A model generated the notes under the pieces. That model saw nothing but the letters and a program-made list of their open reading frames with translations, searched no databases and had not been told where the DNA came from. This document shows, in pieces, positions 10,378-40,658 of a DNA stretch of 64,000 bases. The stretch covers positions 62,001-126,000 of IMG/VR virus record IMGVR_UViG_3300034072_002211; one strand, given 5' to 3'. How positions within the stretch are numbered: the stretch's first letter is position 1; the number at the start of each line of letters is the position of its first letter. Position numbers and translations under genes: made by a program.

Positions 10378-11376
10378 TTAGTCCTTGGACACAACACCAA
10401 ACTCAGTGGCGTTCACATCGCCGATGTTTGCCCAAGCGGCACCGGTGGCTGGGTTGTTCTCCCAAAACGCAACACCACCCTTCCAACCAGGTCCAATTGG
10501 CGCATTAACTGGACCCTCATAGTCAGTGCCTGCTACGCGAAGAACAGGTCGCACGTTCTGTGGAAACTGTCCAGTGCCGTCATTCTTAGAGAATTCAGCG
10601 ACTGCCACTGCTTTGATTACATGACCCGCAGTAGTAGCCGGCAATGCCGCACCAGTAAAAGTAGACTTCGTGCCGCTTTGTGAGGTATAGATAACATCGG
10701 TACCAATAGTGGATGCAGGTGCGTCATCTACCTGCGAGAAGTCACCGACCCAACCGGTGTTAGTACCGTTAGCCGTTGGGTTACGGCGACGAATGGTATG
10801 ATTGATAGTGCTGTAGTCAGCGAGGATAAGCTGGTTCATGCGCGTTGCACCACCTCGTCCGTAGAAGCGAACTTTAGAAATATTTCCAATCGAAGTCGTA
10901 TCACCAGTCCAACGATTGACGAGAACACCTTCCTGGAAAGACTCAATAAGCCCCTCAACTCCAATCTTGATCCTCATGTCGATAACCTGCCACTCCTGAA
11001 ATGGAGAACCTAGACCAGTCACAGTGTCAACCCAGGCAGTTCCATTCCAGATTTGGATCTTATCACTCCACTGTGCCTCAGCGAATCTGCGGACTTTTTC
11101 AACTCCATCACTGTCGTAGAAGACAATACTTGCGCGACGTGATCCATAAGCGTCACCAGTATATCGGCGATAATGCAACCACAGGACATCGTTCGTAGCA
11201 GTCACATTGCCAGTTACAGAATCAGTCAGCGGAGCCTCAACATAATCAACGTCGTTGCTAGGAATTTCAACTGAACCCCTGCTAAACCCGCTGATAGCCC
11301 CAGAAGTAGATTCTGTGACACCAATGGTATAAGTGGAGTAGCATTCCAGCTCATCTCCGATGAAGAAAGTGGTCAT
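10378..11376 (-). CDS. Virion beta-rich protein, paralog of 57351..58376
   Basis: 332 aa; C-terminal WENNPATGAAW..VNATEFGV matches ENKDPATNEPW..VNAVQAGY. Confidence 0.75.
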   Translation of the reverse strand: MTTFFIGDELECYSTYTIGVTESTSGAISGFSRGSVEIPSNDVDYVEAPLTDSVTGNVTATNDVLWLHYRRYTGDAYGSRRASIVFYDSDGVEKVRRFAEAQWSDKIQIWNGTAWVDTVTGLGSPFQEWQVIDMRIKIGVEGLIESFQEGVLVNRWTGDTTSIGNISKVRFYGRGGATRMNQLILADYSTINHTIRRRNPTANGTNTGWVGDFSQVDDAPASTIGTDVIYTSQSGTKSTFTGAALPATTAGHVIKAVAVAEFSKNDGTGQFPQNVRPVLRVAGTDYEGPVNAPIGPGWKGGVAFWENNPATGAAWANIGDVNATEFGVVSKD

Positions 11377-24685: not shown

Positions 24686-27013
24686 TTAGTCGGCGATGAC
24701 CAGCTTGTCGTCTTCGACCTTCACAACCGCCGTGCCGCCGTTCTTGAGCGAACCGAAGAGCATCAGTCGGCTCAGTGGCTGAGCCAGCTCGTTCTGGATC
24801 ACGCGGCTCAGAGGACGCGCGCCCATCTTGGGATCGTAACCCTTGGTCGCCAGGTAGCTCTTGGCGTCGTCTGTGAGGGCAATAGTCACGCCCTTCTCCT
24901 GTGCCTGCTTGTTCAGCTGGGTCAGGAACTTCTCCACGATCATGAGCATGTTCTCGCTCTTGAGCGCGTTGAACTTCACGATTGCGTCAAGCCGGTTGCG
25001 GAACTCGGGAGCGAACATCTTCTCGATAACCTTGTCGTCATTGCCGGCCACGCTGTTGTCACCAAAGCCCAGGGTGTTCTTCTGGAGTTCGCTGGCGCCA
25101 GCGTTGCTGGTCATGATGAGGATCACGTTGCGGAAGTTCACCGTCTTGCCTGCGCTGTTGGTCAACTGGCCATTGTCCATGACCTGCAGGAAGATGTTGA
25201 AGATGTCCGGATGGGCCTTCTCGAGCTCGTCGATGAGCAGGACGCAATGCGGGCTGTTCTCGACCGCGTTGGTCAGGAGACCCGAACCCGAGGCACCATC
25301 GCCAAAGCCCACGTAGCCCGGAGGCGAACCGATGAACTTAGAGACACTGTGCTTCTCCATGTATTCCGACATATCGAAACGATGGAGCGGAATGCTCAGG
25401 GTAGCTGCGAGCTGCTTCGCCAACTCAGTCTTACCCACACCAGTCGGACCAGCGAACAGGTAGCTACCCTGCGGCTTGTTGGGATCGCGCAGACCAGCAC
25501 GGCTCAGGATAACCGCGTTCTCCACGACCTCGACCGCCTGGTCCTGGCCGAAGACTGCCTTGAGCAGATCGTCCTTGAGGTGAGCCAGCTTGGCGGTCTC
25601 GTCTTCCTTGACCGTCTTAGCTGGGATCTTCGCAATGCGCGCGACTTCTTCTTCGACCAGCTCAGTGGTGATCTCAGTCTTGCGCTCTGCCTCAGGAGCA
25701 ATCTTCTGACGAGCACCGGCCGCGTCGATGACGTCAATGGCCTTGTCAGGCAGCATCCGGTCAGTCACGTAGCGGGCAGTCAGTTCGACCGCAGCTTCCA
25801 GGGCCTCCTGAGTGTAGGAGATGCCGTGGTATTCAGCATAGACCTTGCTGAGACCTGCGAGGATGCGCTTGGCGTCTTCGACCGTCGGCTCCAAGACGTC
25901 CAGCTTCTGGAAGCGACGCAGGAGTGCCCGGTCCTTCTCGAAGTGCTTGCGGTATTCCTCGTAGGTCGTGCCACCGATGCAGCGCAGCTTGCCCTTGGCG
26001 AGAGCCGGCTTCAGCAGGTTGGCCACGTCCAGCGCACCGCTGCTACCAGCGCCAGCGCCCATCATGGTGTGGATCTCGTCGATGAAGAGGATCGGGAGAA
26101 TGCCCTTCTCTTCGCCAACCTTCTCCACCGCGTCCAGGATCTGCTTGACGCGCTCTTCCATGTCACCACGGAACTTGGTGCCAGCCATCAGCGCACCAAT
26201 CTCGAGCGAGTAAACGATGCTGCCCTTGATCGCTTCGGGAACCTGCTCCTCGGCGATCATCTTCGCGAGGCCTTCGACCACAGCCGTCTTACCAACGCCC
26301 GGCTCGCCGACGAGCACGACGTTGTTCTTGGTCCGGCGAGCAGTGGTCAGCACCAGCGAAGCGACCTCAGTCTCACGACCAATCAGCGGGTCAATCTTGC
26401 CGGCCAGTGCCTGCTCGTTGAGGTTGACGCAGAACTTCTCGAGCAGACGCTCGCTCTTGGACTTCTTGGGTCCCTTGTCCTCGCCTTCTTCCTCGGTCTC
26501 TTCGCCCGCGAGAGCAGGGTCAGAGCTCTTGGCCTTCAGCTTCTCGACCGTGTCGTCTTCGTCGTCGCCCAGCAGATCATCGTGAGCAACTGCGCTCTTG
26601 ATGTCAAAGGCTTCCACGTTGTTCTTGGCGAGGAAATAGACAGCGTGGCTGTCAGTGTCCGTCTCGGCCAGCAGCGCGAGCAGAATGTCCACAGCACGAA
26701 TGCTCTGGCGACCGCTGAACAGAGCCTGGGTCACAGTGCGCTGAACAACGCGGTTCAGCGGCAGCGTCTGACGGGGAGGAAGACCATTGGCTTTGCCCAG
26801 CGCACCCGACTTGAAGTGGGCCACCAGGTCAGCCGAGAGGTCCGAGAGGTTCACACCAATCTCAGTGAGAACCTCAATGACGCGCGCGTCCTCGAGAACC
26901 GCGGACAGCAGATGCTCGAGGGTCACATATTCGTGATCATTCCGCTCAGCGATCTGCGCGGCGCGATCGAAAATTTCCTGAGCCTTCGTTGGGTCAAAAC
27001 TGTCCAGCGACAT
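24686..27013 (-). CDS. clpA: ATP-dependent Clp protease ATPase subunit ClpA
   Basis: Clp-N HEYVTLEHLL; Walker A GEPGVGKT and GPTGVGKT; GTKFRG pore loop; LGF ClpP-docking loop; GARPL; no ClpB middle domain. Confidence 0.93.
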   Translation of the reverse strand: MSLDSFDPTKAQEIFDRAAQIAERNDHEYVTLEHLLSAVLEDARVIEVLTEIGVNLSDLSADLVAHFKSGALGKANGLPPRQTLPLNRVVQRTVTQALFSGRQSIRAVDILLALLAETDTDSHAVYFLAKNNVEAFDIKSAVAHDDLLGDDEDDTVEKLKAKSSDPALAGEETEEEGEDKGPKKSKSERLLEKFCVNLNEQALAGKIDPLIGRETEVASLVLTTARRTKNNVVLVGEPGVGKTAVVEGLAKMIAEEQVPEAIKGSIVYSLEIGALMAGTKFRGDMEERVKQILDAVEKVGEEKGILPILFIDEIHTMMGAGAGSSGALDVANLLKPALAKGKLRCIGGTTYEEYRKHFEKDRALLRRFQKLDVLEPTVEDAKRILAGLSKVYAEYHGISYTQEALEAAVELTARYVTDRMLPDKAIDVIDAAGARQKIAPEAERKTEITTELVEEEVARIAKIPAKTVKEDETAKLAHLKDDLLKAVFGQDQAVEVVENAVILSRAGLRDPNKPQGSYLFAGPTGVGKTELAKQLAATLSIPLHRFDMSEYMEKHSVSKFIGSPPGYVGFGDGASGSGLLTNAVENSPHCVLLIDELEKAHPDIFNIFLQVMDNGQLTNSAGKTVNFRNVILIMTSNAGASELQKNTLGFGDNSVAGNDDKVIEKMFAPEFRNRLDAIVKFNALKSENMLMIVEKFLTQLNKQAQEKGVTIALTDDAKSYLATKGYDPKMGARPLSRVIQNELAQPLSRLMLFGSLKNGGTAVVKVEDDKLVIAD

Positions 27014-27510
27014 TACTTCTTCCTTTCGTTCTTAGCGCGCTTCTTCTTCGCCATGTCGAGAGTCAGCTTGCTAACACGATCTGTAAAACAGACACCATCC
27101 AGATGGTCCAGCTCATGCTGAAAGCACCTAGATGCCAGGCCGGTCAGTTCTTCCGTATGAACTACGCCATCCCGATCTTGGTAGCGGACGGTTACATTCT
27201 TGGGGCGCTTGACCTTGAGAAGTAATCCCGGAAAGCTAAGACATCCTTCCTCTACAGCGATGAGCTCTTCACCGCTTTCAATGACTTCCGGATTATAGTA
27301 GATCTTGGGTGTTCCACCAATATTCATGGCGAACACGCGGTAGAGAAAACCCATCTGATTGGCCGCGAAACCAACACCACCTTCCTCGGCCATCAGCCGA
27401 GTGAGTTCAGCTTCAATAACCGCTGAATCGGAGGGTGGATTCTGAAAGTCCCACGCGCAACTCGCGGCGTAGAGACTCTCGGCTCCATCGGTCTGTAGGG
27501 TGAACTTCAC
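27013..27510 (-). CDS. def: Peptide deformylase
   Basis: GVGFAANQ, EGCLS and QHELDH motifs intact; likely GTG start at 27510. Confidence 0.95.
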   Translation of the reverse strand: MKFTLQTDGAESLYAASCAWDFQNPPSDSAVIEAELTRLMAEEGGVGFAANQMGFLYRVFAMNIGGTPKIYYNPEVIESGEELIAVEEGCLSFPGLLLKVKRPKNVTVRYQDRDGVVHTEELTGLASRCFQHELDHLDGVCFTDRVSKLTLDMAKKKRAKNERKK

Positions 27511-27865
27511 TGAGCAGTCGCCTCGCATATTGTTCGATCTGGGCGCGAGCTTCTGCCGTTACATCACGACACATCTGGATTCTGTCTCTTGGGGAGAACT
27601 GTTCCCGTTGTGCCGTCTGAACATTCGTATGCACAAAATCACCAACCGACACAAGAGCAAAATTCACGTCCATGATGAGACTTGCGTCCACACGGCCGCC
27701 ACGGTCAGATGAGTTGCGCTCCAGGAGGCGACGGAAGTCTAGGGCCCAAGCTGAGTAAGCCTGAGAGATGCGATTACACTGGCGAATGCTGGGGTCGAGT
27801 CCACGCGGCGCTTGTGCGAACGCGGGAGTGCTTACCAAGAGCAAAGCAGCAATGGCTAGGCGCAT
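27413..27865 (-). CDS. Hypothetical protein with signal peptide
   Basis: MRLAIAALLLVSTPAFA-Q, SD ggagg; 3' end overlaps def. Confidence 0.65.
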   Translation of the reverse strand: MRLAIAALLLVSTPAFAQAPRGLDPSIRQCNRISQAYSAWALDFRRLLERNSSDRGGRVDASLIMDVNFALVSVGDFVHTNVQTAQREQFSPRDRIQMCRDVTAEARAQIEQYARRLLSEVHPTDRWSRESLRRELRVGLSESTLRFSGY

Positions 27866-27884
27866 CTGTCCTCCTTTCACTACC

Positions 27885-27912
27885 TAGATAGCAAAAGGAG
27901 GTGAGATGTCAA
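27885..27912 (-). promoter_or_regulatory. sigma70-like early promoter
   Basis: TTGACA-N16 (ending GC)-TATCTA. Confidence 0.6.
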
Positions 27913-28751
27913 GCCCTCAGTTCACGAGCTTTTTCAATGAGCTCACGCTGTTCGTCGGTAAGCTTGCTGGGTTCAAAGACCACTTCGACCATCATGTCGC
28001 CGCGCTGGCCATTACCTAGTGGCATACCTTTACCTGATGCCCGGAGGCTCTGGCCTGGATGGATGCCGGCAGGAACGCGCATCTTGATCTTGCCACCCTC
28101 GATGGTGGGGATCTCTTTCTCAGTGCCCAGCATTGCGTCCAAGTAATCAATTGTCACGCTGGTAACGAGGTGATAGCCCATGCGTAGGAAGGTGTGGTGA
28201 GGAACCACGTTGATCTTCACATATAGGTCACCTGGGCTAACTCCCTGCATGGCGTCATCACCCTTGCCCTGGAAGCGCAACTTGATACCATCCTGAATAC
28301 CAGCTGGGATCTTGAACTGGATATTCTGTGCTTCTTTGCCAGGGAGGTTGTATTTGACGTCAGCATCCTTGCCCGAGAAGGCTTCCTCAAGCGTGATCGC
28401 ATAAGACAGCACAATGTCGCGGTTGCGAGCATCCTGGGGGTAGGGATTGCGGGAACGACGGATATCGCGGAGGATCTCATCCAGATCCATGAAGCCTTCG
28501 TCAGGACGATTGCTCCAGTGGAAAGTGTGACCGGGTCGGAAGCCACCAGTCCGCTGGGCGTCATATTGCGCCTTCTTCTGCGGATCCTTCAGGTGCTCAT
28601 AGGCCTCATTGATCTCTTTGAACTTGGCCTCTGCCTCAGGTGCCTTGTTGGTGTCAGGATGGAACTCTTTCGCAAGCTTGCGATAAGCACTCTTGATCGT
28701 GGCATCATCTGCCGTGGTGGGGACGCCGAGGACCTGATAGAAATCTTTCAT
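27909..28751 (-). CDS. DnaJ/CbpA-type co-chaperone (class B, no Zn finger)
   Basis: J-domain with HPD; C-terminal GDLYV and GDMMV DnaJ-C domains. Confidence 0.92.
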   Translation of the reverse strand: MKDFYQVLGVPTTADDATIKSAYRKLAKEFHPDTNKAPEAEAKFKEINEAYEHLKDPQKKAQYDAQRTGGFRPGHTFHWSNRPDEGFMDLDEILRDIRRSRNPYPQDARNRDIVLSYAITLEEAFSGKDADVKYNLPGKEAQNIQFKIPAGIQDGIKLRFQGKGDDAMQGVSPGDLYVKINVVPHHTFLRMGYHLVTSVTIDYLDAMLGTEKEIPTIEGGKIKMRVPAGIHPGQSLRASGKGMPLGNGQRGDMMVEVVFEPSKLTDEQRELIEKARELRA

Positions 28752-29343: not shown

Positions 29344-30186
29344 ATGACTTTGTATTCCATGTGGTGCTTAACCGGCCGCATGGAATACACCTACCTCACA
29401 CCTCCCGAGAAGGCAAACGATGGCTGGATGGGTCATCGTATCAAACTCTTCTTGAAACAAGATCGCTTTGCTGAGTTTACGACCTTTCTCGAAACCTACT
29501 GCGGTGAGAAAGGCAAAGATTGGCGACTAGAATCTCGATCCAAGAAATCCTTTTGGATATGGGGTGATGAACCGGCCAAGATCCGTTTCAAGCACAAGAA
29601 GCACGCTGCCCTGCTGAAGCTTCAGTGGGTTGAGGATACTGATCCCATGGAAGACACATGGAATCAGCTGAAGAAGATGACGCTCAACTATCCCACGCTT
29701 GGGTCAATCCGACCAACTGGTAAGAGCATGGCCAGCCAGGCGATCGGCCGTGGTATCCGCAACACCCACGTGACCACAGTGGCTCCTCCCACAAATCCAA
29801 ACCCGCTTCCCTGGTATGGGTCGATCGGCGATCCCTTCTGGACCCTCTACCAAAGCAAAGCCCTCTCCCGTAAGTCATACAGCAAGATGATGGGTTTGGA
29901 CTATGACTCCATCTACCTCGACACCGAGGCCAGCATCAGTCCTTACTGGCTCAAGGAGAACCTTGAGGACAAGGGCCATACTGTCATGACCACTCAGGTT
30001 CTCAAGGAACGTCTCAATGGAACTGGATCAAAGTCAACCACCGTATGCTGGTCGCCAGAAACACTACGTCTACGGGATGAAGTTCTACCTGACTCCGAGC
30101 AGGCAAGCGGACTTAGAGAAGGTGCTGGAAACATTCCAGATCACCAAATACCGGCTGACGGTGGAGAGTCAGCTTCGGGGGACTGA
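29344..30186 (+). CDS. FKLxW-family domain with long low-complexity C-terminal extension
   Basis: IRFKHKKHAALLKLQW near aa 80-95; 3' 170 nt overlap the next ORF. Confidence 0.7.
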   Translation: MTLYSMWCLTGRMEYTYLTPPEKANDGWMGHRIKLFLKQDRFAEFTTFLETYCGEKGKDWRLESRSKKSFWIWGDEPAKIRFKHKKHAALLKLQWVEDTDPMEDTWNQLKKMTLNYPTLGSIRPTGKSMASQAIGRGIRNTHVTTVAPPTNPNPLPWYGSIGDPFWTLYQSKALSRKSYSKMMGLDYDSIYLDTEASISPYWLKENLEDKGHTVMTTQVLKERLNGTGSKSTTVCWSPETLRLRDEVLPDSEQASGLREGAGNIPDHQIPADGGESASGD

Positions 30187-30496
30187 TTTGCCTGAAAAGG
30201 CATTCATCAGCTTTCGTATCAAGAAGCAGGCAATGTTGTTCAAGATCGTGTGGATCCCGTGTGATCCACCGTCTCCTAGCGTCGTTCTGCCAATTATTCG
30301 ACGAGTCATGCCCAGCATCATCGCGCAGGATATCATCGGAGTTTCGCCCATGACCGGCCCAGTCAGCGACATCTTCACGCTGCGGGTCAAATACGCAGAT
30401 TCGCAGGACCAGGCTTCAACACCTGTATCTCCGTACGAAGTCCGCTCTGGCGATGAACCTGGTGAAGAGCCGGACGCGGACCGCACCTCTGAGTGA
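30017..30496 (+). CDS. FKLxW-family domain fused to a gp23 major-capsid-like (Gol-region) peptide
   Basis: AFISFRIKKQAMLFKIVW, then VVLPIIRRVMPSIIAQDIIGVSPMTGPVSDIFTLRVKY; SD aagga upstream of ATG 30017. Confidence 0.75.
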   Translation: MELDQSQPPYAGRQKHYVYGMKFYLTPSRQADLEKVLETFQITKYRLTVESQLRGTDLPEKAFISFRIKKQAMLFKIVWIPCDPPSPSVVLPIIRRVMPSIIAQDIIGVSPMTGPVSDIFTLRVKYADSQDQASTPVSPYEVRSGDEPGEEPDADRTSE

Positions 30497-30694
30497 TTCT
30501 AAATTGCGATATGATGGTATTCATGTTATCTGGGTTCTACCCGCTGGCGGGTAGCATCTAGCTAACACGCATAGCGTCATGTCTCAACTTAGGATCGCTC
30601 GGAGTGGCGATTATATGTACGGGAAATCACACAGATAACCCAAAGAGACTCGTGGTAAATATGGTGTAATCCTTCTCTTGAATAAGGAAATCCC

Positions 30695-31264
30695 ATGACC
30701 ACTCAGCTTCAGCTACGTCGTGGCACTACCGCCGAGCATGCAACCTTTACGGGCGCTCAGGGCGAAGTCACGCAGAATACTACCACCAAGCGCCTTCACT
30801 CCCATGACGGATCGACTGCAGGTGGTCTTCCACTAGCTCTCTTGAGCGATCTACCAACCGGTGTCCCATCGGGTGGTTCACAGGGTCAGGTTTTGACCAA
30901 GAACTCTGCGACCAATGGAGATTTGGTTTGGGTCACTCCGACTCCTACTAACGTGACGACCATCCAGAATAGGACGGTTACCTCTGCCTATACTCTGCAG
31001 CTTGGTGACGCATATCTTCGTATGAGCTATAACAGTGGGACAGTTGTTATCAACATTCCAACTCATGCGGCTGTCCCATTTCCAATTGGCACTCAGATCA
31101 CAGCTATTTGGGTCGATTGTAATGCAATGAGCATCAGCTTTAGCAGCGGTGTGACTTATACCACTCCTGACTCGCTTAATCTGCGTAAGCCCGGTAGTTC
31201 TGTGACGATGACTAAAGTAGCTCAGAATCACTGGGATATTGCCGGTGATATGAGGGTAAGCTAA
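30695..31264 (+). CDS. Fibre adaptor with Mtd-N-like N-terminus
   Basis: MTTQLQLRRGTTAEH..FTGAQGEVT; one PSGGSQGQVLTKNS repeat; C-terminal domain shared with 9532..9960; TAAATA at 30656-30661. Confidence 0.8.
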   Translation: MTTQLQLRRGTTAEHATFTGAQGEVTQNTTTKRLHSHDGSTAGGLPLALLSDLPTGVPSGGSQGQVLTKNSATNGDLVWVTPTPTNVTTIQNRTVTSAYTLQLGDAYLRMSYNSGTVVINIPTHAAVPFPIGTQITAIWVDCNAMSISFSSGVTYTTPDSLNLRKPGSSVTMTKVAQNHWDIAGDMRVS

Positions 31265-32112
31265 TGGCTGTTCGTCCGGGCGTAATTGGTGCTTCTAACA
31301 TTCTTCAGAAGCGCATCTCACTACCAGAATCTGCATTTACCCCTGCTAATGAGAATTCTGCGTATATTTTCAACACTAACGCCACTACAACCATTGGTAG
31401 TGGTGCTACGGCGGTTACTGTCACCAAAAGGACAGCTAATAACGATCCGGCTGGACAACCAAACCCTCAGAATCCTTGGGTTCCTCCTACATATGATTCG
31501 GTAACCCAGTCTATGACCTTTTCAGGAACCCAAAGTCTAGCCTATCTGGATACTGATACTCTTCATGTTTATCCGCCGTATTCATGTCAAGTTGATTTTA
31601 GGCCATCTGTTGTTAACAAGACTACAATGTATATTGTGAACAACGGACAAGGCGGTGGTATTGGCTGGGAAGAATTTGTCATTTATCTAAACAATGACAA
31701 TGCCATGATCTCGACCTGTGCTGCTAATAACGGCGAAGGCGGAAATGCTGCAAGTGGACCTCCATACACCGCTTATTATAACCTGGGAAAGGTTATGATC
31801 AATACTTGGAATCGGGTTGGTGTTATGTGGTATAATGTCGGTGGAACTCTTAATGAATCTACCGGCATTTATACAGGTGGGACCAATTATATGCGTGGCT
31901 ATTTGAATGACATTGAGATATTTACTCGTCCTTTGAATGGTCAAGCATGGACAGGCGCAGGTGGCACAAAGACGGCAGAATCTGGACGTCTACCCTGGAA
32001 TTCTCCAAATGGTATCTGTATTGGTAACGATAGCGCGAACTTTGGAACTACATTCTTTCAAGGATCTATCAGGAATTTCTTTATCGGTAGAACTCTATTT
32101 TGGCCTATCTAA
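31264..32112 (+). CDS. LamG/concanavalin A-like lectin virion protein
   Basis: TAATG-coupled; C-terminal ICIG...FFQGSIRNFFIG..FW matches 59384..59992. Confidence 0.75.
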   Translation: MAVRPGVIGASNILQKRISLPESAFTPANENSAYIFNTNATTTIGSGATAVTVTKRTANNDPAGQPNPQNPWVPPTYDSVTQSMTFSGTQSLAYLDTDTLHVYPPYSCQVDFRPSVVNKTTMYIVNNGQGGGIGWEEFVIYLNNDNAMISTCAANNGEGGNAASGPPYTAYYNLGKVMINTWNRVGVMWYNVGGTLNESTGIYTGGTNYMRGYLNDIEIFTRPLNGQAWTGAGGTKTAESGRLPWNSPNGICIGNDSANFGTTFFQGSIRNFFIGRTLFWPI

Positions 32113-36377: not shown

Positions 36378-36596
36378 TCATTTGTAGCGGAAGGTGATGC
36401 GGCCTTTAGACAAGTCATAGGGCGTCATTTCTACCTCGACGGTATCAGCCACGATGACCTTGATGTTGTTCTTACGCATCTTGCCTGAGATGTGACCAAT
36501 GATCACCATCTTGTTCTCAAGCTCAATACGAAACAGTGCGCTGGGAAGAACCTCGATTACTCGGCCCTTCATCTTTAGTGTGCCTTCTTTTGACAT
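36378..36596 (-). CDS. infA: Translation initiation factor IF-1
   Basis: 72 aa: [18 protein letters not shown]...[29 protein letters not shown]. Confidence 0.96.
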
Positions 36597-36626
36597 AACT
36601 CTCTTTGTTAGGATACTCAGGGCTAT

Positions 36627-37052
36627 TTAGCCCTGAGTCCTAATCGTCTGTTCTGCCAAGCTGTCATCGTTCAGCATGGGAACGATCCACCAGAGGTTGG
36701 GAATGACATTCTCAGGCATCGAGTATGCTTCCACAACTTCTACGATTTCGTCGGTCATCGTAGAGAGGTGGTGCATAGCCTCGGTGTTGTGACAAGAGAA
36801 CCAGTGAACCGCATAGTCATCACCTTCGAGGGTAAAGCGGTAGTTCCACTCAATGTCCACACCTGCTTCTTCGATGAACTCACGACGCATGGCGTCGTGA
36901 GCACTCTCGAACATCTCCACCTTGCCGCCAACCGCATTGTAGAGACCCGCCTGCCAGTCGGGACGGTTCTTGAGGATCAGAGTGACCCTCAAGCCGTCAT
37001 CGCTATACAGCAGACCCGCTACATAGTTGGTCTTGCCCAGGACGATATTCAC
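36627..37052 (-). CDS. Nudix hydrolase
   Basis: GGKVEMFESAHDAMRREFIEEAGV Nudix box. Confidence 0.9.
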   Translation of the reverse strand: MNIVLGKTNYVAGLLYSDDGLRVTLILKNRPDWQAGLYNAVGGKVEMFESAHDAMRREFIEEAGVDIEWNYRFTLEGDDYAVHWFSCHNTEAMHHLSTMTDEIVEVVEAYSMPENVIPNLWWIVPMLNDDSLAEQTIRTQG

Positions 37053-37696
37053 TTGGCGTTACCCTGGCCGAGGATCTTGATCTCGTCGCAAACGCCGAGG
37101 TCCTTGGCTTCCTGGGCCGACAGCCACACGTCGTGAGCCGGCAGAAGCTTCTCTTCAATCTGAGCCTTGCTCAGACCGGTGTGCTTGATGTAGTGGTTGA
37201 GCATACGAGTCTGCGTGAGCTCATATTCCTTGACTGTTGCGAAAAGCTCATGAGCCTTACCGCGATCACCCCACGACCACTGGTGCGACAGGATCGAGGT
37301 GTTCGGGGTCAGGATGCGATGACCCTTGGCGCCGGCGATGAACGTGAGGAAGCCGCACGAACCAATCATACCTAGGCCCATGGTATGGACGGGGATGGCC
37401 GAGCCTTCCATTGCGTCGATGATCGCGAACGCGCTGTTGACTTCACCGCCGGGCGAGTTGATGATCAACGTGAGGTGATCGAAATCATTCTTGGGTGCGA
37501 AGTTTGCCTCAAGGATCCAAGTGACAATCTTGCTTGCGGTTTCGCTGTTAAAACCACCGCTCAGGAAAAAGATACCCTTGTCCTTCAGCGAAGGTGCCGG
37601 GTTGACGGGGACGGTTGCCATAACCGTGGTTGCCTCTGGGGTCGTCTCGACCTTCACCTCGGCAACACCCTTTTCAGCACCAGTCTTCTTAGCCAT
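37049..37696 (-). CDS. clpP: ATP-dependent Clp protease proteolytic subunit
   Basis: INSPGG; Ser in GMIGSCG, His in LSHQ, Asp in HDVWLSAQEA; start MAKK with SD aggag. Confidence 0.9.
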   Translation of the reverse strand: MAKKTGAEKGVAEVKVETTPEATTVMATVPVNPAPSLKDKGIFFLSGGFNSETASKIVTWILEANFAPKNDFDHLTLIINSPGGEVNSAFAIIDAMEGSAIPVHTMGLGMIGSCGFLTFIAGAKGHRILTPNTSILSHQWSWGDRGKAHELFATVKEYELTQTRMLNHYIKHTGLSKAQIEEKLLPAHDVWLSAQEAKDLGVCDEIKILGQGNAK

Positions 37697-37807
37697 ACTA
37701 ACTCCTATTGGCCCATCGTCGGGCAACAAGGACACCATATTGGTTAGCAGATTGGTTTGTCAGTATTCATTTTGATTCTCCGAAAATGTCCTGCTAGTCA
37801 GCGGCTT

Positions 37808-38717: not shown

Positions 38718-38803
38718 GCGGGTGTGGCGGAACAGGCAGACGCGTCGGATTTAGGTTCCGATACCCAAAAGGTGTGCAGGTTCGATTCCTGTCACCCGCA
38801 CCA
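38718..38803 (+). tRNA. tRNA-Leu(TAG)
   Basis: Acceptor gcgggtg/cacccgc, anticodon arm tcgga-tttaggt-tccga, long variable arm, T-loop ggttcgattcc, encoded CCA. Confidence 0.95.
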
Positions 38804-39032
38804 CACGTAATTTATGTTGGGAACTGCCTAGTCGGGCGACGGTTCGACGAAGACGACGGTCATGGTAGTTGGTGCTTTGTGGACTTGTATTCAGTGGTGA
38901 CACTGGGTGTTGTGATGATAAGTTCGTCAGGTGACGTCATCGCTCCTATTAGCCTGTTCGGACAGCTACGGCCCTCCGGTATGAAGAGTCCGGTGCTAGG
39001 GTGAGGAACCTAGCCCCAACATAAATAGTGGC

Positions 39033-39581
39033 ATGCGCTATTATGAAATCTTTGAGCGAGACAATCGCAAGATCATTTCCAGCCTCAGGGCTTTGATTGA
39101 CCATCCAAATACTGAGCCCGCTCTTCGTGATGTGGCTCAGCGTAAGTTGGACAAACTGCTGGGTTCGGAAGAAGATCGTCAGGCCGATATCCTGGCTACT
39201 CGTAAGGCCAAAGCAGCCGCCGAGGAAGAAGCAGCTCGCAAGGCTGCGGCAGAGAAGAAAGCTGCCGCGGAAGCGCAGGCAAAGGCTGACCGTGCTGCTC
39301 GTGAAAAGCAGCTTGCGGACAAGGCCGAAAGGGATTTGAATCAGCGTCGTGCTCAAGCACAAGCTGATCGTGAACAAGAAGAACTCCGCGCTGCTTATGA
39401 CCGTAAGCGTTCAGCGGCAGAACTGAAGAACACGAAGCCAACTGGGAAATATACGTTCAAGCCATTGGACACTGACCCAGAGAATGAAGGTGACTTTGAT
39501 CCGGGTGCGCCAGCAGATAAGGCTGGTTTCAAGCCCAACGACAAGTTCAAGCCACAGCCATTCAAGCCAACGAGTTTCTGA
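39033..39581 (+). CDS. Late hypothetical protein, candidate internal head protein
   Basis: ATAAATA at 39021-39027; MRYYEIFE N-terminus; Ala/Lys/Glu coiled coil. Confidence 0.75.
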
Positions 39582-39588
39582 TCGAAAC

Positions 39589-39665
39589 GGCCCCGTAGCT
39601 CAGCTGGATAGAGCGTCTGCCTCCTAAGCAGAAGGTCACTGGTTCGAATCCAGTCGGGGTCGCCA
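39589..39665 (+). tRNA. tRNA-Arg(CCT)
   Basis: 77 nt; anticodon arm tctgc-ctcctaa-gcaga; ggttcgaatcc; encoded CCA. Confidence 0.96.
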
Positions 39666-39671
39666 GATCGG

Positions 39672-40481
39672 ATGATCTACAATTCAGGCCTCAAGAGCAA
39701 ATGGCATCGCAATCCCAAGAAGCGCACGCTTCTTGAGAAGATCGCACGCCGTTTTACATTTCCCAAATACAATGACATGGCGCTGACCTGGGATGCTTGG
39801 GACAAGCGCAATGAGCGTCTCAAGCGCAACTTTCCTGTGCGCTGGTTCATCAACGAGACCATCCCTGATCTTTGGCGTGATTATGTGATGTCGCCTGCCC
39901 GCAAGGTTCGGCAGTTCTTCCGCTATCGCTTCAAAGAACGTCTCCACATCATTGAACTTGATCTCAAGCCAGGCTATTATGATCCAGACACTCGACTGAT
40001 CCATGGTGCGTTTCAGATGCTGGTTGATTATGTGGAGATCCAGCTTGCGGCAATGCATCATGCTGCCGAGGAAGCTGAGAAGAGCCCTGGCGAGCCACGC
40101 AAGCGTTATGACCTCAGGATTCGCCGTATGAAACGCAAGCATGGTCGTGATCCCGAGGCTGGTCTCGCTTATCTGGATTGGCAGATCAATGAGTCGCAAC
40201 TACCTGGTGTTCCTATGCTAGGTGGCATCACTCAGAGTGAATATGCCAAGGAAAAGAAATTCCTCTATGAGTGGTGGACTGTTTACCGCAAGCAACGAGC
40301 CAATCTCCACAATGATCCTCTGATCTGGGATCACAACGATTATGACCCCAAGGTGAGTATCTTTTCGCAAAATACCCGTTATCAACATCATCTCATGCAT
40401 CAGCTAGAAGTGTTCTACGAGGATGAAGACACTGAGATGCTTCATCGTCTAATCAACATCAGAAGCAGAATGTGGGTGTAA
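39672..40481 (+). CDS. Hypothetical protein
   Basis: 269 aa, [23 protein letters not shown]; C-terminal [12 protein letters not shown]. Confidence 0.8.
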
Positions 40482-40488
40482 AAAGTTC

Positions 40489-40519
40489 TTGCTTTCCGAG
40501 GACGTTTTGCGTATAAATA
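40489..40519 (+). promoter_or_regulatory. Composite promoter: sigma70-like TTGCTT-N17-TATAAA overlapping T4-type late TATAAATA
   Basis: Directly upstream of a GNRA leader hairpin (40530-40549) and tRNA-Pro. Confidence 0.65.
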
Positions 40520-40556
40520 GATTACCAGCAGCGAGAAGCAATTCTCGCTAGAACAT

Positions 40557-40658
<102 letters not shown>

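Follow-up and report, generated by a model that had tools for sequence, protein, structure and literature searches.

Why should a huge phage encode, on a protein of only 159 residues that is not a capsid protein, the one stretch of the T4-type major capsid protein that is most conserved and that in T4 is known to bind elongation factor Tu (EF-Tu)? The question arose from an earlier note on a 64,000-nucleotide stretch of viral DNA (the window), which pointed to a copy of the T4 Gol peptide on a small open reading frame at 30017–30496 (+). We have asked whether the similarity is real, whether the gene is a broken capsid gene, whether it is maintained by selection, and what the segment might do outside a capsid. 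The note's observation was correct, whilst its interpretation was supported only in part.

A capsid-protein segment on a small gene

The ORF at 30017–30496 (+), stop codon included, encodes 159 amino acids and is preceded by a Shine–Dalgarno-like AAGGA at 30004–30008 (+), 8 nt before the ATG at 30017. This start is supported by orthologues that conserve the protein from its first residues, and the public gene call, of 102 aa from a TTG at 30188, is too short. Residues 89–126 (nt 30281–30394) read as the note gave them and form the conserved core of a capsid-like segment covering residues 89–132 (30281–30412 (+)).

The similarity of this segment to T4-type capsid proteins is far beyond chance. 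Residues 89–132 match positions 7–50 of the 376 positions of the Pfam profile PF07068 (Gp23) with E = 3.2e-12 and 47 bits against a cut-off of 24.4, and PHROG 138 (major head protein) is matched with E = 2.7e-12 over positions 63–111 of 444. Against the solved T4 gp23 chains (E = 8e-5), residues 89–129 align with gp23 94–134, which is 29–69 of the mature protein and corresponds to the Gol/N-arm segment (Gol peptide, 93–122). By our count, 17 of 41 positions (41%) are identical, including R-R, P, I-A, D-I, G-V and P-M, and the positions invariant in the T4 superfamily are kept. The T4 peptide as given in the note agrees with the T4 sequence in this alignment. The closest relatives of the segment are the major capsid proteins of jumbo phages of the RaK2/PBECO4/Asteriusvirus type, the best identity being 70.7% over 41 residues to the capsid protein of the Asteriusvirus jumbo phage JNE01, and the similarity continues to the “LRV-YAD” positions that follow. 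Such a protein is probably the evolutionary source of the segment.

The gene is neither a capsid gene nor a broken one. A full-length gp23 pseudogene around the fragment had been named beforehand as a finding that would count against the note's reading, but tblastn with three full-length capsid proteins found only the 40-residue piece in the window. A capsid-protein HMM of 390 positions, which we built from about 110 capsid proteins, hit exactly one open frame among all six frames of the window, at HMM positions 59–105 (E = 5e-21). The complete HK97-fold body (E-loop, P and A domains; about 390–520 residues) is therefore absent, and no HK97 fold appears in the predicted structure. Two database hits that seemed to cover more of the query, from Pelagibacter phage Mosig and Campylobacter phage CJLB-12, are simply the N-terminal parts of ordinary capsid proteins of 445–450 residues.

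The phage's own capsid protein was sought for comparison with the fragment. It is not in the window, and a search with a jumbo-phage capsid protein returned 8000 relatives, of which none of the 120 listed came from the same contig. DNA-pattern scans of viral contigs found either only abundant unrelated capsid genes or only the small genes, and no locus held both.

Genomic setting

The window belongs to a contig of 468 kb from an uncultured phage, and an identical protein lies on a 277-kb IMG/VR contig (UViG_3300034072_002211). A gp44-like clamp loader and the gp23-type motif place the phage in the T4-related group of jumbo phages, group 2.2 of PMC7824862. In the relatives whose flanks were retrieved (L003–L007), the gene order is the same: a ClpA/B-like unfoldase, peptide deformylase and DnaJ on the minus strand, then a MazG-like gene, a paralogue of the target's N-terminal domain, the target gene and an Mtd_N fibre-like gene on the plus strand, with IF-1, NUDIX and ClpP some 6 kb further on. 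The window's own genes were confirmed; they also include a deoxyribonucleotidase, and the IF-1, peptide deformylase and tRNAs mentioned in the note are indeed nearby. The placement with portal, protease and scaffold genes that is seen for the capsid gene in the Mosig locus is not found here, and no head gene was found nearby in any of the loci examined.

The note described the region as early-type, which is not established. A T4-type late promoter box occurs only twice in the window, neither time near the gene, scans for sigma-70 promoters and terminators were uninformative, and fibre-like genes lie next door. Downstream of the stop codon, a G+C-rich hairpin (7-bp stem, 4-nt loop) at 30537–30554 (+) lies inside a larger structure at 30511–30580 (RNA fold −32.8 kcal/mol, z-score −3.7, with 0 of 200 shuffles folding as well). 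It may mark the end of the transcription unit, although no T-run follows and it is not a canonical intrinsic terminator.

Conservation and selection

Full-length orthologues of 158–187 aa, 39–71% identical, occur on contigs of 134 to 465 kb, including IMG/VR contigs of 462 and 465 kb, those in syntenic positions being 49–71% identical. Codon-level comparison of five orthologues shows selection on the protein rather than recent DNA transfer. Synonymous differences are saturated (pS 0.7–0.85) between the window and L005, L007 and L138 (a further orthologue), yet the motif stays 66–76% identical in these pairs, whilst the rest of the protein drifts to 17–35% at its most divergent. Against L007 the N-terminal domain falls to 34% and the tail to 29%, against L138 they fall to 49% and 17%, and against L005 they stay at 62% and 58%. 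Over the orthologues compared, the motif is 61–76% identical, the N-terminal domain 34–74% and the tail 17–75%, and dN/dS of the motif is 0.09–0.45 where it could be computed. Thus, the capsid segment is the most constrained part of the protein, and there is no sign of the relaxed selection expected of a pseudogene fragment.

None of 50,697 deposited phage genomes has a full-length counterpart of the protein. Matches of the motif in these genomes were essentially one per genome (1006 places in 1002 records; 2397 in 2396), and the listed ones fell on capsid genes.

The carrier domain and its family

Residues 1–88 (30017–30280 (+)) form an N-terminal domain of about 85 residues ending in an F-K-L-x-W helix, which we call the FKLxW carrier domain. 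With a 12-sequence alignment, AlphaFold predicts a compact beta-alpha-beta-beta-alpha domain (folded core about 18–80) with strands 19–25, 45–49 and 60–66, helices 27–39 and 69–78, and pLDDT 86–91 over residues about 20–80. Everything from residue 93 on has pLDDT below 50. The capsid segment and the tail are therefore predicted to be disordered, and look like an exposed, flexible appendage that is not packed on the carrier. The fold itself is not informative: Foldseek against the PDB gave only generic ferredoxin-like, ACT and PII matches, all with E above 0.05, and no similarity to head decoration or adaptor folds such as Soc, gpD or ClpS. An origin of the domain from a split intein or homing element was considered and rejected, since the predicted fold is not a Hint or nuclease fold.

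A profile of the carrier domain finds 73 representatives among 1.84 billion proteins, 42 of them below 1e-10 and nearly all 86–288 residues long. About 18 carry the capsid segment directly after the F-K-L-x-W helix, and the others carry different tails. Alignment of the profiles of motif-bearing and motif-less members (hhalign 98.4%, E = 5.8e-15) confirms that the two types share only the carrier domain.

One of the motif-less members is the upstream ORF at 29380–30186 (+) (268 aa as called, P0151; P numbers denote the small proteins collected here). It has the same FKLxW domain (BLASTP against the target E = 8e-6) with a different tail, and overlaps the target gene by 170 nt in another frame; the overlap is 17 nt in L007. 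We asked whether its tail is a decayed copy of the capsid motif, but hhalign aligns only the N-terminal domain and the capsid HMM does not hit it, so this is not supported. The paralogue looks dispensable. In L003 it has an in-frame TAG where the window has CAG, and in L005 and L006 no gene is called and no profile match is seen between the MazG-like gene and the target. The tails of the motif-less paralogues appeared to resemble hallmark motifs of DNA polymerase B, helicases and ribonucleotide reductase, an idea that we reject because Pfam gave only sub-threshold hits, the profile found nothing among the PDB sequences and tblastn found nothing meaningful in phage genomes.

The C-terminal tail of the target (30413–30493 (+)) is Ser/Pro-rich and then acidic, the tail from 127 to 159 being acidic in line with the note's acidic tail, and ends in a conserved R-S-G-D/E … D-R-T-S-E motif shared by the window's protein, P0001, P0004, P0005 and P0008. 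Similar endings occur in the motif-less paralogues P0156 and P0168, so that both types can end in the same R-S-G-E … R-T-S-E/G tail. No other ORF of the window ends this way.

The motif in other small proteins

A length-restricted search found 28 clusters of small proteins (90–187 aa) with the motif, the core of which, about 26 residues, is nearly invariant across all of these. In some the motif follows other N-terminal sequences (P0009–P0011, P0027), in P0015 it ends the protein, and in others it opens the protein and is followed by a domain that ends in F-x-L-x-W (P0020–P0023, P0025, P0026, P0028 and an ORF in another huge-phage locus, L135). That this last group contains the same carrier domain in permuted order remains a suggestion, since the profile matches are weak (E = 0.04–0.3) and the structure model, at pLDDT 40, was unusable.

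A few huge-phage loci also have small ORFs with other pieces of the capsid protein: a C-terminal piece directly upstream of the motif ORF in loci L009 and L140, and a middle piece 1.1 kb away in L135. These are sporadic, and the L009 piece has no relatives. Capsid-gene fragments therefore arise repeatedly in these genomes, but only the N-arm/Gol piece has become a recurrent, selected module.

The segment in T4 and a possible role in trans

In the unexpanded T4 head, gp23 residues 66–105 are disordered and point inward toward the scaffolding core, the first ordered residue being L106. After expansion the region becomes the N-fist and N-arm, with contacts within and between capsomers, and the mutations A94V and G97S, at the start of the segment, change head length (PMC9546572, PMC9958956). 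Independently, the isolated 29-residue Gol region is sufficient to bind EF-Tu domains II and III, prefers EF-Tu:GDP, inhibits the GTPase and thereby lets the e14 Lit protease cut EF-Tu; 13 residues of a 20-residue core matter. Gol is the most conserved part of gp23, which led to the proposal that all T4-type capsid proteins bind EF-Tu (PMC3014915).

The note inferred that the phage carries just this immune-trigger or EF-Tu-binding epitope on a small non-capsid protein, acting as a decoy for capsid-sensing defences, as an EF-Tu modulator or as a regulator of capsid assembly. That the segment is the gp23 Gol/N-arm region, that it sits on a small non-capsid protein with a genuine N-terminal domain and an acidic tail, and that no capsid gene or pseudogene surrounds it are all supported. 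The three functions remain inferences.

All readings share one step, in which the protein acts by presenting the peptide to the partner that normally reads it on the capsid protein. We tentatively favour EF-Tu, the only partner shown experimentally for the isolated peptide, although this is less likely than not to be the answer. In this view the gene encodes a small cytoplasmic protein that displays the segment as a flexible linear peptide on its carrier and works by molecular mimicry, occupying in trans the site on EF-Tu that the same segment of the capsid protein occupies. It would tune or pre-empt the interaction between capsid protein and EF-Tu, with a possible effect on translation and handling of the very abundant capsid protein, or on host systems that act through EF-Tu. 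The segment, its selection, the predicted fold of the carrier, the predicted disorder, the family and the synteny come from the analysis itself, whereas binding to EF-Tu, inhibition of its GTPase, activation of Lit and any consequence for the infection are inferred.

Several features point this way. The unit conserved in the small proteins runs from about T4 residue 94 to about 131 and does not include the N-fist, the first 25 residues of mature gp23 (from residue 66; PMC9958956). About two thirds of it corresponds to residues 106 onward, which in the capsid belong to the ordered body of the same subunit (PMC9546572). A free copy of that part has no vacant place in a capsid lattice, which points to a partner that reads the stretch as a linear peptide. 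The motif is kept whatever lies around it, it is predicted to be disordered, and in this clade the gene lies among translation and proteostasis genes (peptide deformylase, DnaJ, the ClpA/B-like unfoldase, IF-1, ClpP and tRNAs). However, EF-Tu binding is documented only for T4 and E. coli, and identity to the T4 peptide is only 41%. In other subfamilies the neighbours are not translation genes but a gp55-like gene (named from our reading of its sequence), baseplate genes and an Mre11/Rad50-like pair in L009, and an RNA ligase in the locus L141. The other capsid pieces on small ORFs are not explained by EF-Tu binding, the motif-less paralogues show that the carrier domain has a role independent of the peptide, and in a host with a Lit-type protease a free Gol peptide should be harmful to the phage.

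A role in the procapsid is possible and nearly as likely. The segment could dock the protein onto the scaffolding core or a capsid-protein subunit of the assembling head, where it would regulate shell assembly or size or be carried into the head with the FKLxW domain as cargo or decoration. The start of the segment is the scaffold-facing, size-determining part in T4, and several small relatives also carry, after the motif, a helix that weakly resembles the capsid propeptide helix (capsid HMM positions 9–50, E = 0.03–0.15), although this helix is absent from the window's protein. Ferredoxin-like, ACT and PII-type domains often oligomerise, which would fit a symmetric lattice, and the small ORFs with C-terminal or middle capsid pieces may also fit, but these are sporadic (one cluster only). 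The lack of the N-fist and of any obvious vacant site in the lattice, together with the absence of head genes nearby in the loci examined, weigh against this reading.

An anti-defence mimic is unlikely on present evidence. The protein would present the capsid epitope to host sensors of short capsid motifs (Lit-type proteases acting through EF-Tu, CapRel-type sensors), binding them without activating them, or would occupy EF-Tu, so that the late burst of capsid protein goes unnoticed. Lit and CapRel are described as sensing capsid proteins through short motifs, and a recent preprint reports an Avs7 sensor that uses EF-Tu as a structural partner (bioRxiv 10.64898/2026.01.04.697583). The motif is under strong selection and is predicted to be exposed, and huge phages carry many counter-defence genes. 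In L141 a permuted family member lies 1.5 kb from a T4 Rnl1-like RNA ligase, an enzyme that in T4 counters an anticodon nuclease. The weakness is one of logic, as the isolated Gol peptide, once bound to EF-Tu, is itself sufficient to activate Lit (PMC3014915), and a free copy would be expected to trigger such a sensor earlier rather than blunt it. Moreover, Pfam, PHROGs and NCBIfam give nothing beyond the capsid match, and no similarity to any known anti-defence protein was found. A bolder form of these ideas, also unlikely but not excluded, is that huge phages have turned the EF-Tu-binding epitope of their capsid protein into a separate, diffusible effector that loads EF-Tu before or alongside capsid synthesis, to reprogram translation or to blind host immunity that reads the capsid through EF-Tu (Lit-type proteases, EF-Tu-dependent Avs sensors); it would be the first phage protein built as a mimic of its own immune-trigger peptide. 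A partner not yet considered, for example a chaperone, also remains possible.

Finally, a functionless remnant of a duplicated or rearranged capsid gene, fused by chance to a neighbouring ORF, might be suggested by the sporadic capsid pieces and the apparently dispensable paralogue but is strongly disfavoured by the conserved position in contigs with saturated synonymous sites, the conservation of the segment itself, the ribosome-binding site and the frame intact in all orthologues, the recurrence of the motif in at least 28 clusters with several architectures, and the lack of any flanking remainder of a capsid gene.

Relation to known proteins

The peptide and the capsid family are known; what has not been described, as far as our full-text literature searches show, is a stand-alone protein with the Gp23 motif. 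In T4 the stretch is an internal part of a 521-residue capsid protein, whereas here it is the only capsid-derived part of a 159-residue protein with an unrelated carrier domain; in both it is functional, or selected, as a short linear unit. The jumbo-phage capsid proteins that are closest in sequence have 390 residues and a full HK97 fold. T4 gp24, the vertex protein that arose by duplication of gp23, is likewise a capsid-protein derivative kept as a separate gene, but it keeps the whole fold and builds the pentons, whilst the present protein keeps about 40 residues. Targeting peptides that load cargo into heads or shells, such as the capsid-targeting sequence of T4 internal proteins and encapsulin cargo-loading peptides, also pair a short peptide with an unrelated folded domain and are a possible analogy for the assembly hypothesis, but there is no sequence relation and those peptides are not copies of the shell protein.

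Why the Gol/N-arm stretch is so conserved and why it binds EF-Tu are still open questions. A family of small proteins that keeps only this stretch, under strong selection and outside any capsid fold, is a natural experiment which says that the stretch has a function as a free peptide, and it provides a simple reagent with which EF-Tu binding, Lit activation and effects on T4 head assembly become directly testable in laboratory strains. There is also a practical point, in that database pipelines label these proteins “major capsid protein” or “major head protein” or give them a Gp23 domain, which misleads annotation and marker-gene surveys based on g23. Short proteins ending in the motif are already present in phage databases under such a label: residues 91–122 of the window's protein match the last 32 positions of PHROG 12830 (short proteins annotated “major head protein”, profile of 128 positions; E = 1.7e-5), where only the motif matches and the N-terminal parts do not.

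Organisation of the locus

The FKLxW paralogue upstream of the gene for the N-arm-bearing protein (window 29344–30186, + strand) overlaps that gene by 170 nt. In the relative L003 (5364–6002) the same gene has an in-frame TAG where the window has CAG (Gln), and homology continues after it; this is either a nonsense mutation in a dispensable gene or TAG read as Gln. The public gene call for this locus (P0002, 102 aa from a TTG, window 30188–30496) truncates the protein, apparently because the caller avoided the overlap with the upstream ORF, whilst the orthologues show that the true start is at 30017.

In the 198-nt spacer that follows the gene, an unusually stable RNA structure is predicted at 30511–30580 (− 32.8 kcal/mol, z − 3.7). 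It has no T-run and so is not a standard terminator. Immediately downstream of the gene, at 30695–32112 (+ strand), a protein with an Mtd_N (major tropism determinant N-terminal) domain and a fibre-like C-terminus is followed by a 282-aa protein of unknown function.

The phage encodes its own proteostasis and translation set, located at 24686–28751 and 36378–37738 (both − strand) and consisting of a ClpA/B-like two-ring unfoldase, peptide deformylase, DnaJ, IF-1, a NUDIX hydrolase and ClpP. The order of this set is conserved in relatives of 134–465 kb. Further along the window, at 38718–40633, there are three tRNA genes (Leu-TAG, Arg-CCT and Pro-TGG), each separated by ORF-sized spacers. The window has two T4-late-promoter-like TATAAATA boxes in all, against 0.3 expected by chance, and one of the two lies at 40512, just before tRNA-Pro.

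Capsid-derived segments in other viral contigs

Small ORFs holding different pieces of the capsid protein, at C-terminal positions ~ 313–362 and middle positions ~ 150–214, are carried by other huge-phage contigs (L009, 9693–10285; L140, 8596–9115, − strand; L135, 1926–3573, − strand), where they lie next to or near the N-arm-bearing ORF. In L009, the two adjacent ORFs share a similar leader sequence. On a further viral contig of 46.5 kb (L134), an 86-aa ORF at 10865–11134 (− strand) joins a twin-arginine-like signal sequence (S-R-R-W-F-L-G-G, hydrophobic stretch) to the capsid N-arm motif.

In locus L141 (4001–7215), a permuted family member, in which the motif comes first, lies 1.5 kb downstream of a T4 Rnl1-like RNA ligase. 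In locus L142 (1489–2251) it is followed by an overlapping paralogue that lacks the motif, and this is the same pairing of motif-bearing and motif-less copies as is seen in the window. A very abundant environmental group of 390-aa capsid proteins, represented by at least 120 IMG/VR loci in the pattern scan (L011–L130), has an almost invariant N-arm motif at residue ~ 67.
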